Source of the DNA: Piromyces finnis finn
Taxonomy: Eukaryota > Fungi > Neocallimastigomycota
NCBI GenBank assembly: GCA_002104945.1
Contig: MCFH01000030.1
Coordinates: forward strand, 124,001 to 188,000
Reading direction: 5' to 3'
DNA length: 64,000 nt
Shown here one piece after another: positions 48,574 to 57,532 of this stretch (the first letter of the stretch is position 1; each line of letters starts with the position of its first letter). A program made the translations under genes and the position numbers. Under the pieces are notes generated by a model. The model ran no database searches and was not told the DNA's origin. It saw only the letters and a program-made list of their open reading frames with translations.

Positions 48574-49376
48574 GTGTTAATATTAATATAGTTAAAAAAT
48601 ATAATATGTTTAATATTAAAAAAAAGAAAAGAAATAAAATATGAAATAAATATTTAATAATTGGTTTTTAATTTTTTTCGAAATTTCATGCATTACCCTC
48701 CTTCAAATATTTTTGGCACATAAGCATTATCAAATGTTGATTTATAAATATTTACTTCATGTCCTTTATCAATGTTTACACACCCACATTTATATTCTCC
48801 ACTAAAATTTGAATTTTCAATATATAAATCATAATACTCAAGGCCAAAGAAATTAAATAATCTATTATTGCATTGTGAACTTCCTTTAAATGTAGAATCA
48901 ACTATTTCAACATTTCCACTTAAATTTATACAATTATCGCTCGAATATGATGATGGATTATAAGTGACATTCTTAAATTTTATATAATCATTAATATCAA
49001 TATCAAAATATGAATCAATATTTCCAGTAATTGATACTGAATCAAAAAATACACTTTTAATATTATTAAAAAATATATTTCCAATAATGGATATATTTTT
49101 TATTTCAATTTCTTTTACATTTTCACCAAAATATAATTTGTTTGATAAATTTTCAAATTTTATAAAAGAAGTTTCAACTGATTTTCCAATAATTATTATT
49201 TTTTTATGATTATCGTTTACAATAAAATCATTACTAATGTATATTTCAGAATCTATATTTATTATTATTTCATCATCTATTTTAGATATTAAATCAGCAA
49301 ATTGAGCTTCGTCAACAATAACCGAATATACATATGTTATTAATATTAAAAAAAATAAACCTATTTTTATATTCAT
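44098..49376 (-). CDS. Class C (7tm_3)-like GPCR with signal peptide, pectin-lyase/Pmp-like beta-helix ectodomain and EGF-like module; copy 1
   Basis: Signal-like MNIKIGLFFLILITYVYS; GGA/FxxN beta-helix repeats (NFTNNYVMHEGGALY, FENNTASKYGGVIY); EGF CEPSCNTGTCINNNICSC...C; TM exons SVDFLIIILIG, GFSLSYGSILVKTIRIY, ...FYTIYSLKK...SQYT*. The exons I checked are in frame. Confidence 0.8.
48501..48573. repeat. (ATT)n microsatellite in intron 1 of receptor copy 1
   Basis: Directly visible. Confidence 0.9.
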
Positions 49377-49899
49377 CTTTTTAAATTTATACAAGGAATT
49401 AGCAACTAATTTTCGCATTAAAAATAATATTTGTTCATTCAAGAATGGTTCACTTATGATTGAATTTATTCAAAATGCCTTAAGTATTTTATTTAAAATT
49501 AAGTTTATCTTTAAATAAATTGAAGTATAAATATTTTAATTTAAAGATAAACTTAATTATCATATAGCATATTTATTATTATTTTTCCCGATAATATAAA
49601 ATATAGTTTAAATTATATAGTAAAAATTACATTTTTTTTCATTCATATAAAATAATATTTTTTAAGCTTTTGTTTAAAGTAAATTTAATATCTATTAAAT
49701 TTAATAAAGTTTTTTATGTATAAAACTTATTTAATATTTTAAATGCTTATAATATAGTAAACATAATATATAAGAAAAAAAAAGTAATTACTAGATTATT
49801 CAAAATCAAATGTATAATAAATAATATATTAGATACTAAAACTATGTTAATACTATAAATTAAATTATAATAGTGATAAAATAATAATTTGTTCAAAAT

Positions 49900-50116
49900 T
49901 ATTAAGAGTTGTTTAATTTAGGTTTATAATTATGTCAACTTTATTAATATATTTTATGATAAAGAACTACTTGCGTTACATTCTTCTAAAACTACATGTA
50001 TTTATACATTTACATTGTGGCTTAAACATATAATCAAATACAATATATACAAATACGTTTTAATACATTTCAATACATTTGAATACATGTGACATAACGT
50101 TTTACATATTCTAACA
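49900..50116 (-). repeat. 3' LTR (217 bp; element strand TGTTAG...CTTAATA)
   Basis: Apparently identical to 54532-54748 and immediately preceded on the element strand by the PPT. Confidence 0.93.
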
Positions 50117-50128
50117 TTCCCCCTCAAA
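50117..50128 (-). other. Polypurine tract (TTTGAGGGGGAA) abutting the 3' LTR
   Basis: The element strand reads GGTTTGAGGGGGAA|TGTTAG, the typical Ty1/copia PPT-LTR junction. Confidence 0.9.
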
Positions 50129-50487
50129 CCTAATTTTCTACTAAGTAAAATTTGGTTTGCTGGTGAATATGTGCATTTTATTATTTCTAAACTATTAACT
50201 ATAAACTAAATCTAATGTTTAAAATTTTTATATTTCATTAATTGGAATTTAAAATATTTCACATATATTATTCGCTAATTGCTTTAAAGAATTTAAATAT
50301 TACCCTATAACTTCGTTTTTATGGATAAACTGAAAACCTTTGTATAATTGGGTAGTATTAAAGTTTAAAATTTGGATTGGATATTCATAAATTGTTATAT
50401 CATCCATTAAGGATTGAAAACCCTTCCGGTTTTACATTATCCTATAAACTATATTGGTAATCTCTCTGAGATTTACACAGAATTATA

Positions 50488-50642
50488 GACAACACATGGT
50501 TTATCTCTTTGATTTTACGTCCTTATGACAACACATATGGATAACTCTTTTTGGTTTTACGTTCTCTTAACAACCTATGGTTAATCTTCTTGGTTTTACG
50601 TTCTTCGGACAACCTATGGATAACTCTGGTTTTATGTCCTTA
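50488..50642. repeat. Imperfect 39-42-bp tandem repeat x4 in the element's 3' internal region
   Basis: Units (G/A)ACAAC..ATGG.TAA.CT..T.GGTTTTACGT.CT start at about 50488, 50527, 50569 and 50608. Confidence 0.8.
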
Positions 50643-52552
50643 TAATTACAATTTTCTTTAGAATATTAGCATAATTGTATTTCAATCTATTTGTAAATAC
50701 TAATTAATAATGGTAAAATTTTAATTAAATTCTTAATAGTTATTTAGTTTATGTATATTGAATTTTAACATTTTCTTTTAGGTGTTTTTCCTTCCTTTTA
50801 TGCCTTTTGTATTGATTAATTATTCTTATAATATTTAAGAATATTTTACTTTGTATTTGAAATTTTGTTCTTTTCATTTTTACATATTGAATCTTATAAA
50901 TTTTTACAATTTGAATTTCAATTCATTCTATTTATTAAGCCTTAGTTTCTATGCAATGTTTTAGTTATTTCCAATGTTTAACTAGAAACAAAAATTATTA
51001 TCTTGAATTTTAAATTTCGTATATTCACTACTTCCCCCTCAAATCTAGATGTTTAGTAATAAATACTTAGATTTGAAAAAGAGAAATTTAAATTTCATAA
51101 AATTTCATTCATTTTGCATCAAATTTTCATAATAATGAATAATTTTCCATAACATATACGATAAGTATTAATACCTATATAAATAATAAATAACATATTC
51201 TAATGTTTTCATTCATTTTTCTCAATTGCTTATCCTTTAAAATATAGTGAAATAATATTTTCATGATAATATATTTTAATGTAGTGATAATCATAGAATA
51301 TCAAACTAATGAATAAAATATTCCTCAATTATGTATTTCTTTACTTCAAATTAAAATAAGTAGATATACCAGTAAAATTATAACAAGTTAATATTGTAAG
51401 ATAATGACATTTAAAATATCGATTGTTGAAGAGAATAAAGTTCTTCTAAATTATATCGAAGTCGGCTCGGTTAATTAGAATGTCAGCTAATTGGTCGGCG
51501 ATCACTCACTACGTTGAAAGTGGCGATTTATATATGAGGTTACTAAATCACCGTAAATTATATTTTAAAACGGCGTCACAACATTCTTGAATGTTGGTAA
51601 TAAATAAATATGATGAATCAATGTCATCTAAATCTAAGGAGCCCTTACTATGAAGGTACTACATTGTTATTGATGGGACCAAATTAAATATATATAGGTC
51701 TAAAACCATCATTAATAATTATCTATGAATATAACTCATTTCACGCTAAGTTAAATCATGATAAGTTGTTAAAATATTATTGAATATACCCATTTCACGC
51801 TAGGTTATTCAAAGTATATATATATGTAGAATATGCTCATTTCACGCTAAGCATTTCTAACTTTAATAAATTACCTCATTTGAAATATTTGCTATGTATA
51901 TTAGCAATAACAGCCTACGGGATGAGCATTTGACCAGTAATATATTTGCTTTATAGGTAGCAATAATTTAAATAATGCTTTTGAGGCTAAATATTATCTT
52001 AAAGTATTGTTATAATGATTTAATTCAAAGAATAGTATACTGGATTAAATTATATAATACTGATTTGAGTGAAATTATCATAAAGAAATTGATTGACATT
52101 TTCACAAGGATAGTTTCAATGTTTATTGCATAATTTCATTACAATAGGGTATTTTATACAAACTTATCAAATAATGTTTAATTATTCTAATTCATGTTTC
52201 TAATTGTATAAATTTTATGTATTTTCTTTATGTTCTATCTTTCCTCTATGGCGGAAAGAATATTTTCTCATTAAAATAGTAGTAGTTAAAGTATTTGAAT
52301 ATTTCACAAACAATTTATTTACTTGAAATAAATATGTATGCTTTCAATAACAATAATGCTATTTTATGAATGTTAATAAAACTAGTTCTTTTGAAAATAA
52401 AATGAATGTTTGTGGAGATGTTAATTGTATGTTTATGAATATTTACATAATTGAATATATGGATTTTTAAATGATGATGAATGTAAATTGACATAGTGAG
52501 TAGATCAAAATCAAATTAATAAATTTAATAAATTGAGTAAATTAGGAGAATT

Positions 52553-53854
52553 CTAATATACAATGTTTATTTGCCAAAACATTACTAACGTTAAAATAAT
52601 AAATACATTTGCGAGAGAAATATATTTGAAGTTTACAGTTCCGTTTGAATCGTCATTATTATTTAATGAAGAATCATTTTCATCTTTATCATCTTCATCA
52701 ATGTAGTCGTATGTATCAATGTATTTGAATGTGTAAAAATTACATATTTCGCTTGATGCATCTACAGATCTTTTCCCAAAATTAAAATACTCTGAAGGTG
52801 AGTATCCATAAAAAAAAGTTACTTCGTCATAAAAATCATAAGTAATATCATATGTTTTACCATCTCCTGCGATAAAACTTGGAATATCTTCATCAAGAAT
52901 ATTATGTATTCCAGTTTTTATTCCATTCCAAAAATTTTTAAGAAAATTTTGATCTTTCTCCTTTTTGATGTGTTCAAAATCCCATGTGTCATATCCTGAA
53001 AAATGAATTTTAACAGTGTTCCATCCGGATTTTGGATAAAAAGCATAATCAATATTGACATAATAGCTTCCTAACGTTAAACACCAAAGTCCTCTACCTG
53101 AATTTTTTGCATTTCTTATTACAGTTTCATTTTTTATTTTTTCATCTGTGACTTTATCTTTAATTATTTTTTTTAGTTCTTTTTTCATATTTTTGTATTT
53201 CAAACTCTTTTTCATTTCTTCATTAATTAGAGTATTGCTTGCAGGTACTGTTTTTCCAGACTTTCCTCTATAATGGCCAATTGCCATAGCTAAATCAGAT
53301 ATATAATCATATGTAGATGGCCTAGAATTTTTATACGCTTCAATAAATTTTATTGTAACTTCAGCAATTGTGTATGATAGATCTAACATTGGCAGCATTT
53401 GACTAACTGTAACTTCAGGACAGTTATCATTTAAATTTAAATTTACATCATCAATATCTGTATTATTATTTAGATTTGTATTTGGAACACATAGTTGAAC
53501 AACATCATCTCCTGGGCATTGGTTTAAATATCTCGTGTAAGATTCTTCTGAACAGTTACCTTCATTTATATTTTTACATTTTCCTGTTGTTGGAAGAATT
53601 GTTCCATCTGTAAGTGTATCGACATCTTTTATACAGCATTTAATCTTTTCCGAGTCATGTTTACAAATTTTTGGATATGCTTTAGCATTGCCAGTTTGTT
53701 TACCATCTAATTTACATTTATCCTCATTAACGCAAACACCTGTTCCGACATTGGTTACATGACATTTTTGATTTTCAGCAGCAATTACCAATGGTAGAAT
53801 TAAAATTGTCGAAAAAATGTTTAAAAAATATATTACTTTGCTTCTTAATCTCAT
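52553..53854 (-). CDS. Intronless LTR-element cargo gene: signal peptide, two Cys-rich modules, putative colicin M-like domain, KR site, C-terminal TM/GPI anchor (433 aa)
   Basis: Clean 1,302-bp ORF. N-terminal hydrophobic stretch to ~aa 25; Cys modules at aa 31-123; motifs AIGHY(191-195), LTLG(259-262), YDTWDF(288-293), GKTYDI(332-337); hydrophobic C-terminus ISLANVFIILTLVMFW. The ORF itself is certain; the product name is inference. Confidence 0.85.
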   Translation of the reverse strand: MRLRSKVIYFLNIFSTILILPLVIAAENQKCHVTNVGTGVCVNEDKCKLDGKQTGNAKAYPKICKHDSEKIKCCIKDVDTLTDGTILPTTGKCKNINEGNCSEESYTRYLNQCPGDDVVQLCVPNTNLNNNTDIDDVNLNLNDNCPEVTVSQMLPMLDLSYTIAEVTIKFIEAYKNSRPSTYDYISDLAMAIGHYRGKSGKTVPASNTLINEEMKKSLKYKNMKKELKKIIKDKVTDEKIKNETVIRNAKNSGRGLWCLTLGSYYVNIDYAFYPKSGWNTVKIHFSGYDTWDFEHIKKEKDQNFLKNFWNGIKTGIHNILDEDIPSFIAGDGKTYDITYDFYDEVTFFYGYSPSEYFNFGKRSVDASSEICNFYTFKYIDTYDYIDEDDKDENDSSLNNNDDSNGTVNFKYISLANVFIILTLVMFWQINIVY

Positions 53855-54517
53855 TCTTTGGAGTATTTATAATATTAATATATTTGATGAAATTTAATAA
53901 CTCAATTGTAAATAATTATATAAAATAAATTTAGAGTTCACTAGTTAATTTATACTGTTTGTAGTGAATAAGGTAAACTGAGAATGAAATTCTATTATTT
54001 CTAATATAAACATATTGTTTAGTTTAAAATTTAAATTACTTTTAAAAATGGATAAATTTATTTATTTTAAATTTTAAATTTCAACTTAAATTTCTGAATT
54101 TCAATTGTTCTTAAATTTAAATTATAAATTTTAATTTTTAAATTTAAATGTTTGTTTATTCTTAAATTTAAGATCTAAATCTAAATTATTTTATTTAGTA
54201 TAAATTAATTTATGTCTAAAGTATAATATTATCAATGTTCCATGTTTCTTGGACGGAGTTTTCTTTCGCTATATAGTCAGTATTGTTAATTAGGCAATTT
54301 TGTGACTTAGTTTTTTTTTTTTTTTTTTTTTTTTTTTTCAAGATTTCAAAGTTTTAGATCTCTAAATTTCATAATTTTCAATTAAAACTTATATTGTAGG
54401 GATTAGGGTTTCCAATAGTTTTCTCCTATGACATAATGTGTCCGGCGGTTTGATTCATCTTTCAGAGAATCATCTGAGAGTCAATGAGAGTCATTGATAT
54501 TCTCTCATGAGAGTCAT

Positions 54518-54531
54518 TGAGACTCTTAATC
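54518..54531 (-). promoter_or_regulatory. Primer-binding site GATTAAGAGTCTCA, complementary to a tRNA-Lys(CUU) anticodon stem-loop
   Basis: Directly abuts the 5' LTR. The + strand reads TGAGACTCTTAATC, i.e. stem-CTCTTAA loop-stem as in eukaryotic tRNA-Lys(CUU) (recalled sequence; host tRNA not seen in this window). Confidence 0.65.
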
Positions 54532-54748
54532 TATTAAGAGTTGTTTAATTTAGGTTTATAATTATGTCAACTTTATTAATATATTTTATGATAAAGAACT
54601 ACTTGCGTTACATTCTTCTAAAACTACATGTATTTATACATTTACATTGTGGCTTAAACATATAATCAAATACAATATATACAAATACGTTTTAATACAT
54701 TTCAATACATTTGAATACATGTGACATAACGTTTTACATATTCTAACA
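54532..54748 (-). repeat. 5' LTR (217 bp)
   Basis: Same length as, and no differences seen from, 49900-50116. Flanked by the TSD on one side and the PBS on the other. Confidence 0.93.
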
Positions 54749-54852
54749 AAAATAATCTTTTTAAATTAAATATATATATATATATAATATTGATTATTGA
54801 TATTGATATAATATAAAAATCACTTTTAATAATTTCATTTTATATAAATATA

Positions 54853-57532
54853 TTACATTTTATGAATTGTTTCATATTTTGGAACATTTTTATATATATA
54901 TATGTCAAAAAATTTTGAGATATAAAGAAAATATAAAATTACAGATGTATTGATAATTGTACCAAGAGAACCGAATAAATCTTGAACTTCTAATGATATT
55001 TCGTCTTGAAGATTTATGAATTCAATAATTCCCATAGTTATAACATAAACATATACTGGGATATTTAAATGCTAATAAAATATTATAGAGAATGTAATAT
55101 AAATTATTAAAACATTTATTTATAAAAATATATAATTTTCTTTCTTTTTTCTTAAATATTAAATATTGACTTGTTTATATTACCTCTCTAAGTTCACTTT
55201 GAACTCGTCTAATAGAATACGATGTAAAAAATCCAATTAGTAGTATAGTATAATTTAATATAACACTATTATTTTTAGATATTATTTAAAAATATATTAT
55301 AATATTTCAAAATTAGTTTAAAAAGTTATATTATTAATTCATAATATTTTTATTAAAAGATATACCATAAAACACTTGTTTTTGAATAGAAACATTTTTG
55401 ATACACTTTCTTATCATTTGTATAAGCAGATCCAACTTTAATCCTACCAAGTAAAGACCATAATATAACAACAACAATATGAAATGATACTATAGAAATA
55501 ATAATAGCATACATGTTTCCTTTCTTAATACCAACATTCTGTTGTCTATTGATTTTGAATCTTTAATAAAATAAATTATAATTATTAATTTTTTTATCAT
55601 TATTTAGTACAAATTAAATTAATAAATTACATTCTATATATTCTCAAGGTTTTAACAAGAATAGAACCAAATACTAATGAAAATCCCTAATATTGAAATA
55701 TAAATATAATAATTATGTCAAAAATATTATATATATTTATACAGTATAATTTAGTATAATTTAATATTATATAATTATTTTGTAAGCTTACTATATTATT
55801 AAATAAGTAAATTAAATAGCATCTTGTAGTAGTTCTTTCTTTAGTTAGTAATAATATATATCCATATCTTATTATAGATCCTAATAAAATAATAATTAAA
55901 AAATCCACACCTCCTACATATATAGAAATCCAATATAAATTTCAATAAATGAAATTCATTCAAAAATATAAAAAAATATTTATGAATTTGTATTATACCT
56001 CCCATAATTTTTGGGTTTTTTCTATTAACAATTGTTAATATTATCAACACAATAGTTATTATAAATAAAACTACGGTTGTTGATAATATAATATTATCAA
56101 GATACTTTTTTCTATTAAGTTTATAGTTTTCATTGCAATATTTTCCAGTATATAATGTTTCAGTACAATCACATAAATTAATGTTAACACATCTCCCTTG
56201 GCCACATGATAGTTCACACTTGGGTTCATAGCTAAAGTTTTTGTAAAAAGAATTAAAATAATAATTTATAATAAAGAATATTTAAATTATTTACCATGAT
56301 TTAAGTTTATTGCTTTCAAACTTTTGATTAATGTAATTATTATTACACTCCATTATTTCTATTGGTATACCAATTGTGCTATTATCAAATTTACTAAATT
56401 GACCTATGTAATTATGTAAGTATTGATATATAAATATTTTATTATAATATTTCAATAATTAATACAATACTTAAGTTTACCAAAAGAATTAATTGATAAT
56501 TTTATAGTATAATTTCCGGGATTTCCTATTACTATTTAAATATTTTATTTTAGAATATTTTATAGTTTATATTATTAATATTAGAATAAAGTCTTAATAA
56601 AATAATATTTGATTTATTTCTGTATTTTAAACCTTTAATAGATGGGAATTTACAAGAATCACCCCAACAAAATGATTGTGTTTGACCTATTAATTCTACA
56701 TTATAACTATCATCAACCCATAAATTAAAAAACATAAATTCTTCATATTTCACTATAGAAATATCAGATTCAAATATAATCACTAAATATTTAACATATT
56801 AATAAAATATTAAACTATAATTAATATTTAAATTTTAAACTATATATTTCTTGAATTTTAAATATGAATAGATAATTATTTTAATAAATTACTTACAATT
56901 GTTATAGTCATCATATATATTACCTTGAATAGTAATAATCAAAATATATAATTATTAAATTTATAATGTGATAAAATTTGATAAAATATTAATATATAAT
57001 ATATACACATAATTCCATCTGGTAATTTTTCTCCCGAATACAGTGAAACATTCTTTACTGAATTTTCCCTAAATTTTATTTTTGTTGGATTTGTTGCAAA
57101 AAACCCTTTAATATCTTTTAAATTGTCAACATTTGTAATATTGGGTTCCGAATTGATATCAAGGCTATAAATACTATCACCAATTAAAGCTTTATTATTT
57201 TTAAATTCACAATTTTCAAGTGTAATATATTTATTCGTATTAGGACTTATTGAATATATTACGCCGCCATATTTTGAAGCTGTATTATTAAAAAATTTTG
57301 TGTTTTTTATTAAAAATTTACAATTTGACGATGTCCTGTAAATATCATCAATATATATTACAGAACCTTTCTCTGATTTAATATTAGAAAAATATGAGTC
57401 TTCAATAGTTACATTTAATGCATATCTGTTAGATTCACTTAAATAAAAAGTACCATTTTTAAAAGTACAATCATTTATCTTACTGTTATAAATTTTCAAA
57501 TTACTTTTATTAATTGACTTAAAGCCTATATC

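Follow-up and report, generated by a model that had tools for sequence, protein, structure and literature searches.

A probable helper-dependent family of young LTR retrotransposons in Piromyces finnis with host-derived antibacterial-type genes in place of gag-pol

A 64-kb window of the genome of the anaerobic fungus Piromyces finnis (G000:C157:124001-188000, about 18% GC, from an assembly of 56.5 Mb on 232 contigs) contains a retroelement bounded by long terminal repeats (LTRs) whose only gene is an intact, intronless open reading frame (ORF) of 433 amino acids (aa). Positions given below without a contig name refer to this window. Analysis of the element and of its relatives in the genome indicates, with a probability of about 0.8, that it is a member of a young, helper-dependent LTR retrotransposon family in which host-derived antibacterial-type genes replace gag-pol. 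A more far-reaching interpretation is put forward tentatively, namely that the family constitutes a retrotransposon-borne effector cassette with a fixed frame for export, targeting and anchoring, antibacterial payloads exchanged by template switching, amplification by retrotransposition and diversifying selection.

The structure of the element was defined by its repeats. Between positions 49000 and 55800 the repeat finder returned a single long direct repeat (49900-50116 and 54532-54748), whose copies of 217 nucleotides (nt) are 100% identical. The element lies on the minus strand, which makes 54748..54532 the 5' LTR. In this direction the order is ATTTT, the LTR (TGTTAGAA...CTCTTAATA), the primer-binding site (PBS) GATTAAGAGTCTCA, a 677-nt leader, the ORF, 2.4 kb free of ORFs, the polypurine tract (PPT) motif TTTGAGGGGGAA, the second LTR and again ATTTT, the two outer pentanucleotides forming a target site duplication (TSD). 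The individual features are as follows.

54749..54753, minus strand: upstream copy of the TSD, exact 5 bp, ATTTT on the minus strand
54532..54748, minus strand: 5' LTR, 217 nt, in which a TATAAATA box and an AATAAA signal were recognised by eye
54518..54531, minus strand: PBS GATTAAGAGTCTCA, directly after the 5' LTR
53855..54517, minus strand: 5' leader, the first ~130 nt conserved across subfamilies
52553..53854, minus strand: cargo ORF, 433 aa, intact and intronless, its ATG 677 nt past the 5' LTR
53477..53776, minus strand: cysteine-rich N-terminal domain (N-domain; aa 27-126), 10 Cys, beta-rich
52802..53305, minus strand: central payload domain (aa 184-351), conserved H-x-R ... D-x-W-D-F, colicin-M-like fold in a structural model
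52556..52654, minus strand: C-terminal tail (aa 401-433) made up of SNGTVNFKYISL and a hydrophobic run, common to subfamilies A, B and C
50126..52552, minus strand: non-coding 3' internal region, 91-99% conserved in at least 25 copies
50117..50125, minus strand: PPT GAGGGGGAA, abutting the 3' LTR
49900..50116, minus strand: 3' LTR, 217 nt
49895..49899, minus strand: downstream copy of the TSD, ATTTT on the minus strand

The frame at 52553-53854 is the only one of at least 80 aa between the LTRs. Neither the ORF itself, which has no Pfam match, nor the ten longest stop-free pieces of the remaining interior matched gag or pol, and none of the 150 listed genome matches to RVT_2 lies within the element family. 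An Rfam scan of the element gave just one sub-threshold snoRNA-like match. A preliminary description of this DNA had listed two 217-bp LTRs without differences, an exact 5-bp TSD, a PPT in place, the lack of a gag/pol ORF and a single intact, intronless ORF of 433 aa, co-oriented with the element and starting some 680 bp after the 5' LTR, and all of these observations were confirmed. It had also reported a PBS in place; the site does have the right position and is complementary to a tRNA, but it is of a half-tRNA type and not the classical site beginning with TGG.

Searches of the whole genome identified a family of about 25-28 elements with both 5' and 3' junctions, plus solo LTRs. At least 41 LTR copies out of 137 candidates have 98-100% identity, a 20-mer across the PPT and the LTR start is found exactly at 28 sites, a 23-mer across the LTR end and the PBS at 25 sites with at most one mismatch, and the leader occurs 27 times. 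Eight full elements are flanked by eight different exact 5-bp TSDs (ATTTT, TAAAC, AATAC, ATTAC, ATAAA, TATAC, CAACT and ATAAT), eight solo LTRs each have a TSD of their own, and the LTR pairs within elements show only 0-2 differences per 217 positions. All subfamilies agree in their LTRs and 3' region, in the initial ~130-430 nt of the leader and in the final ~100 nt of the ORF. The 433-aa type of ORF is carried by three full elements, located on contigs C157 (the reference), C46 (99% aa identity) and C192 (90%), whose TSDs (ATTTT, TAAAC and AATAC) are all different. These three ORF-bearing insertions supply the second insertion with the same ORF and a distinct TSD that the preliminary description had proposed to look for, and together with the size of the family and the lack of gag/pol they support its view of a cargo-carrying, non-autonomous retroelement. 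Identical sequences flank the solo LTRs on C203 and C81, and some contigs may accordingly be allelic duplicates.

The cargo is modular. In the 433-aa protein a putative signal peptide is followed by the N-domain, the colicin-M-like domain and the hydrophobic C-terminal tail, and the ORFs of other copies combine these outer parts with other central domains.

Type A (C157, C46, C192): putative signal peptide, 10-Cys N-domain, central domain without Pfam match, tail of SNGTVNFKYISL plus hydrophobic run
Type B (C35, C222, C43, C189, C182, C200; 400-401 aa): type A N-terminus (aa 1-136) and tail around a GH24 domain
Type C (C151, 514 aa): its own putative signal peptide and a central domain 55% identical to that of type A, followed by a Cys/His peptidase-like domain and the common tail
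Older copy on C188 (LTR 84%): N-domain and a type-C-like peptidase domain, broken by a stop

Type B copies match Phage_lysozyme (PF00959, GH24) with E values of 1e-23 to 9e-26 and 84.5-91.1 bits, compared with a gathering cut-off of 22.3, and the spacing of their FEG...D...T residues (Glu-8-Asp-5-Thr), read by eye, is that of Glu11-Asp20-Thr26 in T4 lysozyme. All six strong PF00959 matches in the genome are type B copies, and all genome matches to the type A central domain are A and C copies, so that both sets are element-borne. The peptidase-like domain on C151 gave as its best phmmer match among PDB sequences a papain-type cysteine endopeptidase at E 0.6. In the current gene annotation these ORFs appear as 'lysozyme-like' or 'hypothetical', and the transposon context is not mentioned. 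The earlier suggestion that the element carries an effector useful to its host gains substance from the GH24 lysozyme encoded by sister copies and from the colicin-M-like fold of the central domain in the C157 copy.

The origin of the cargo was traced through the N-domain, which comprises 100 aa with 10 invariant Cys and is all-beta in a structural model with a predicted local distance difference test score (pLDDT) of 93 and a predicted template modelling score (pTM) of 0.83. Foldseek comparison of this model with the PDB gave no match, and a search of the ESM Atlas no usable one. In P. finnis it stands at the start of lysin-type genes of at least four kinds. Host genes outside LTRs begin with it as well: C184 has a cluster with GH25, C146 a pair with Phage_lysozyme2, and C180 one gene. 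As the N-domain stands at the head of ordinary host lysin genes outside LTRs, the cargo is considered to be derived from host lysins. The domain itself may be an undescribed cell-wall-targeting domain. The C184 cluster (G000:C184:234673-250437) contains six N-domain genes, four of which encode GH25 lysins of 359-360 aa and two of which are truncated 124-aa copies, in inverted arrangement, and it is built from a duplicated unit of ~10 kb.

A more distant LTR family with 77-81% LTR identity and an identical PBS was found at C152:619.3-623.4 kb, on C208 and on C80. Its ORF of 482 aa shares the N-domain, matches PPPDE/Peptidase_C97 weakly and ends in a similar hydrophobic tail, suggesting that this design of ORF-carrying element is older than the divergence of the two LTR families. 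Loci of this 482-aa ORF family are:

G000:C152:618919-622287
C208:150732-154100

The central domain of the C157 copy was modelled with AlphaFold2 from a 9-sequence alignment (pLDDT 80.7, pTM 0.73). The first 13 PDB rows returned by Foldseek comprise colicin M, PaeM, pectocin M2, syringacin M and the C-terminal domain of a Bacteroides fragilis type VI secretion system (T6SS) effector, the best match having an E value of 5e-3 and a probability of 0.98-0.99. VIA-align placed the model on the catalytic domains of the ColM family (residues ~121-277) with Z 5.1-7.0 over 124-142 residues; the Z values lie below the caution line of the tool at Z 8 but are twice that of the next, unrelated fold (Z 3.5). 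As in the colicin M bacteriocins (ColM, PaeM, syringacin M and pectocin M2), a D-x-aromatic-D-F motif occupies a roughly equivalent place of the catalytic-domain fold, and the D-T-W-D-F sequence is conserved throughout the family (D in 47/63, W/Y/F in 63/63, D in 46/63 and F in 61/63 sequences). A profile search of 1.84 billion representatives yielded 124 clusters with the central domain, which include the C-termini of RHS-repeat proteins (polymorphic toxins), small proteins of Tritrichomonas musculus and Histomonas meleagridis, and fusions to chitin-binding CBM18 modules in other anaerobic fungi. The occurrence in anaerobic fungi, gut parabasalids and RHS toxin ends suggests inter-kingdom transfer into gut eukaryotes. 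The model thus points to a domain of colicin-M-like fold with the distribution of a toxin module, the resemblance to colicin M being one of fold only, and to a fold-level toxin family shared by anaerobic fungi, trichomonads and bacterial RHS toxins.

The way in which such genes entered the element can be read from type D, the most numerous subfamily with 11 copies and no long ORF. From element position ~1100 these copies contain pieces of a serine-tRNA ligase gene (serS) in sense orientation, frameshifted, which match TIGR00414 at collinear model positions (E 8e-11 and 3e-6) and tRNA-synt_2b (E 4e-4). A type D stretch of 640 nt corresponds to the host locus on C1, where the serS gene has introns, in three blocks with 82-88% identity:

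G000:C1 663523-663663: first host serS block
G000:C1 663081-663362: second host serS block
G000:C1 662815-662985: third host serS block

The blocks are contiguous in the element, whereas the host gene has 160 bp and 95 bp between them. The serS fragment of the elements is therefore free of introns, which shows capture from a spliced, processed mRNA. Switching of the reverse transcriptase (RT) between templates in co-packaged RNAs is the established explanation for chimeras with captured genes (PMC13317346).

The family lacks the means for its own transposition, and its cis-acting signals were compared with those of other elements in the genome. The sequence after the 5' LTR does not contain TGG; the PBS is instead the exact reverse complement of TGAGACTCTTAATC, which occurs in the tRNA-shaped context GCG-TGAGA-CTCTTAA-TCTCA-AGGTT-GTGGGTTCGA at C227:117743-117777. 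It pairs over 14 nt, or 15 nt counting the last LTR base, with the anticodon arm of this tRNA-Lys(CUU)-like gene and not with a tRNA 3' end. The search pattern was modelled on eukaryotic tRNA-Lys-CTT, and a reversed control pattern gave no match. ARAGORN detected no tRNA genes within the window. Priming by an internal tRNA fragment is known from Drosophila copia and yeast Ty5, where the primer is the initiator tRNA-Met; the P. finnis family resembles them in pairing with the anticodon-arm region and not with the 3' CCA end, and differs in using tRNA-Lys(CUU). The U5 end CTCTTAAT (54524-54540, minus strand) repeats the sequence of the tRNA anticodon loop itself, and together with the PBS it makes up a perfect inverted repeat of 8 bp centred on two bases, which is not present in Copia relatives with the same PBS.

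In many elements with RVT_2 (Copia) ORFs of 1300-1830 aa the LTRs are followed by this PBS core, the ORFs lying ~3.2-3.7 kb downstream on the same strand, and the junction of PPT and TGTTAGAA(T/A) recurs with one mismatch 0.6-1.5 kb behind RVT_2 matches. Examples are:

C1:152122 (PBS) and 147701 (RVT_2)
C124:56552 (PBS) and 52113 (RVT_2)
C190:21222 (PBS) and 24973 (RVT_2)
C159:267560 (PBS) and 263639 (RVT_2)
C124:115560-120270: RVT_2 element matching at both ends
C164:439415-444045: RVT_2 element matching at both ends
C1:77402-81938: RVT_2 element matching at both ends

These findings document half-molecules of tRNA-Lys(CUU) as common primers of Copia elements in P. finnis. The interior of the element under study contains no gag/pol remnant, and the element is therefore non-autonomous; no autonomous element shares its LTR body or leader. 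Its affinity to Ty1/copia would follow from the cis motifs in common with RVT_2 elements and from the 5-bp TSD, and a Copia helper is plausible. Of the expectation that all cis signals for mobilization in trans by an autonomous copia partner have been kept, and that such a partner would share LTR and PBS, the PBS and the junction of PPT and LTR start are indeed common to RVT_2 elements, but LTR body and leader are shared by none and the helper is deduced. The likeness to large retrotransposon derivatives (LARD) and TRIM elements (terminal-repeat retrotransposons in miniature) that had also been proposed likewise applies in part. Like them, the family has LTRs, PBS, PPT and TSD, no coding capacity for gag, protease, integrase or RT, and would be mobilized in trans by a partner element; however, LARD and TRIM interiors are non-coding by definition whereas an intact and apparently selected ORF is present here, and 4.4-5.2 kb with 217-bp LTRs is a poor fit to both size classes.

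Sequencing data provided some evidence that the elements are expressed. In four sequencing runs of the same organism, 45-75% of the words of the element are present. Contigs of three runs, aligned to 49700-54950, span 49900 to ~54600 with word depths in the hundreds to thousands, compared with depths of 0 in the left and 3-23 in the right flank. Over the A-type ORF the word depth is 270-1150 in two runs and ~0-6 in a third. This pattern of coverage fits RNA better than DNA. Loose contig ends at 52651 continue into B-type ORF sequence, which means that B copies are represented in the runs as well. A true metatranscriptome contained contigs on the LTR and the 3' region.

These observations can be combined into a scenario for the family. 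A host mRNA would have been captured in spliced form when RT switched templates between co-packaged RNAs, and payloads would later have been swapped in the same way, with RT and integrase supplied in trans by a Copia lineage that has PBS, PPT and LTR 5' end in common with the family. The resulting cassette would consist of a signal peptide and the Cys-rich domain, an exchangeable enzymatic payload (colicin-M-like fold, GH24 lysozyme or papain/NlpC-P60-like domain) and a tail resembling a glycosylphosphatidylinositol (GPI) attachment signal. Displayed or secreted by the fungus, it would damage bacterial cell-wall material, while retrotransposition would amplify and diversify the cargo genes and selection would keep their ORFs open. 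Should the cassette interpretation be true, an arsenal against rumen bacteria evolves via a mobile element and not by ordinary gene duplication.

The most serious alternative, though an unlikely one, is that the cargo is a neutral hitch-hiker, an accidentally captured lysin mRNA whose ORFs are intact only because the copies are very young and from which neither host nor element profits. The 0-2 differences per LTR pair imply recent insertions, a useless serS cargo has reached 11 copies and derivatives without an ORF have spread too. Ratios of nonsynonymous to synonymous substitution (dN/dS) calculated with the NG86 method, which is crude in a genome of 18% GC, are 0.41-0.76 among A copies, 1.8-2.6 among B copies and 1.5-3.2 for the N-domain between A and B; values near or above 1 are equally compatible with relaxed constraint. 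What speaks for selection is that ORF pairs differ by 73-102 substitutions and are still without a stop, for which 5000 simulations with the observed substitution spectrum gave a probability of 0.001-0.009 under neutrality. Indels in the ORFs are only 3 or 6 nt long, whereas the adjacent 3' region has 4-14 indel events per ~1.4 kb that are mostly out of frame. Unlike these ORFs, the serS cargo is frameshifted, and the sole old copy, that on C188, is broken as expected once selection lapses. Between the copies on C35 and C43 the divergence is 8.3% in the ORF, 0.7% in the leader and 4.3% in the 3' region, an excess in the ORF that fits either diversifying selection or recombination with diverged copies.

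Other alternatives concern the nature of the ORF and its target. That the cargo proteins act on the wall of the fungus itself or on other eukaryotes, and not on bacteria, would agree with the fusion of homologues to chitin-binding CBM18 in other anaerobic fungi and with a GPI-like tail that would hold the protein on the fungal surface. GH24, GH25 and Phage_lysozyme2 are, on the other hand, peptidoglycan hydrolase families, and the colicin-M-like domain also serves as C-terminal toxin module of bacterial RHS proteins. Its closest folds are moreover those of lipid II-cleaving bacteriocins and a T6SS effector (PMC8469651), and a non-bacterial target is judged improbable. It is very improbable that the ORF encodes a structural or entry protein of the element itself, that is, a highly divergent gag- or env-like protein. 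Such a protein could be expected in the gag position and co-oriented with the element, the combination of a putative signal peptide with a C-terminal hydrophobic anchor corresponds to an envelope-like topology, and the tail has remained conserved between two LTR families that have diverged; this origin is nevertheless difficult to reconcile with payloads such as a GH24 lysozyme, a colicin-M-like fold and a peptidase-like domain, with an N-domain that also belongs to host GH25 and Phage_lysozyme2 lysins outside LTRs, and with members that transpose equally well without an ORF or with serS. Solo LTRs of the family are common, and two of them could in principle flank a resident host gene by chance without forming a mobile unit. 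This last explanation is refuted by the identical LTRs, the matching outer TSDs, the PBS and PPT at the correct inner positions and the recurrence of the same interior between the same LTRs at over 25 loci that differ in their TSDs.

Several observations weigh against the reading of a helper-dependent, cargo-carrying family and against the cassette built upon it. The LTR termini, TGTTAG...CTTAATA, are of the form TG...TA and depart from the canonical TG...CA, although the LTRs of Copia relatives in the same genome likewise end in ...AAA or ...ATA before the identical PBS. The element-by-element comparisons cover ~200 kb of the genome, stitched by coordinates, in which the type D elements and the 3' ends of the B copies are partial and the 3' TSDs of the B copies unread. 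Genome searches found no autonomous element with a homologous LTR body or leader, the leader search returning family members only, and we infer the helper from cis motifs of ~15-20 nt that are common to several Copia lineages. The signal peptide, the papain/NlpC-P60-like character of the C151 domain and the C-terminal tail, which looks like a GPI-attachment signal, were all assigned by eye, and the label 'surface protein' derives only from this GPI-signal-like tail. The central domain has no match to Pfam Colicin_M at E values up to 10, and its 63-sequence profile did not match ColM chains among the PDB sequences. The essential motif of ColM is D226-K-Y-D-F-N-A-S-T-H-R236, or DxYD(x5)HR (PMC8469651), of which only the D-x-[Y/W]-D-F half is present here; HR is absent at +9/+10 and a conserved H..R is found instead at the N-terminus of the central domain, which in addition forms part of a secreted eukaryotic protein with a different N-terminal module. 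As regards expression, the classification of runs X1, X2 and X4 as RNA is a guess, and the contigs give neither strand nor transcript ends nor level. The leader is rich in upstream ATGs, so that genomic RNA driven from the LTR may be a poor mRNA. A TATAAAT sequence lies ~95 nt before the ORF ATG, and the protein may be made from an internal start or promoter.

Capture of genes by LTR retrotransposons is already known, mainly from plants and usually for fragments. In maize Bs1 and in rice and sorghum elements, transduced host sequence stands in place of or beside gag-pol and has been amplified, and some of it is expressed and under selection (PMC13317346). The P. finnis family resembles these as a non-autonomous LTR element with amplified host gene sequence, but the plant elements mostly contain gene fragments or chimeras while complete genes for secreted enzymes are found here, with payloads exchangeable between constant N- and C-terminal modules and in an early-diverging anaerobic fungus. 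In acutely transforming retroviruses a spliced cellular gene replaces viral genes through co-packaging and template switching, and a helper with shared cis signals is needed. The spliced serS fragment is the same signature of capture, although the P. finnis element is intracellular and of Copia type, has no infectious cycle and carries antibacterial-type enzymes in place of growth regulators. LTR-mediated retroposition in metazoans has, through template switching, embedded retrocopies of host mRNAs between LTR sequences (Tan et al. 2016, PMC5131818). In the cases covered by that account the retrocopies are mostly single, whereas the P. finnis chimeras kept all cis signals and reached at least 10 ORF-bearing and 11 serS-bearing copies. 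New are the complete, open and apparently selected genes for secreted bacteria-targeting enzymes, which are the only strong copies of those domains found in the genome, the exchange of payloads within a constant frame, and a sister subfamily that preserves the capture signature of spliced serS. No account of such elements in Neocallimastigomycota emerged from literature searches, in line with the preliminary description, which knew of none in anaerobic fungi. Outside P. finnis, no LTR or PBS was found around homologues on metagenome contigs or in Piromyces sp. E2, where the gene for the colicin-M-like domain takes up 2060 nt for 607 aa and, not being colinearly translatable, must contain introns. 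The family offers a concrete, testable case in which a retroelement drives how the inter-kingdom weapons of a gut symbiont multiply and diversify.

Some minor features of the family were also recorded. Contigs of three sequencing runs join position 52541 to 53876 and thus skip the ORF nearly exactly (1334 nt), although with only 21 nt on one side, and ORF-deleted copies are present on C37 and C196; the junction may represent a deletion derivative or an 'empty' ancestor. At G000:C200:349990-351238 one ATAAA duplication encloses three LTRs, of which the first and second are separated by a leader remnant of 200 bp and ~320 bp of the 3' end, and the second and third by ~195 bp. The locus is an element with a tandem LTR that has undergone recombination and internal deletion. 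The leader of the C157 copy contains an A30 tract (54310-54347, minus strand), at which the copies on C46 and C192 have CTTGAAATCTCAAAAACTAAG. It was ruled out as a poly(A) mark of retroposition, being private to the C157 copy and located upstream of the ORF, and is probably an effect of slippage or assembly. The 3' region holds three 39-nt tandem repeats (50504-50623) and a second PPT motif TTTGAGGGGGAA (51032-51043, minus strand) followed by sequence resembling an LTR start, and this internal motif and the nearby repeats may be traces of older recombination.

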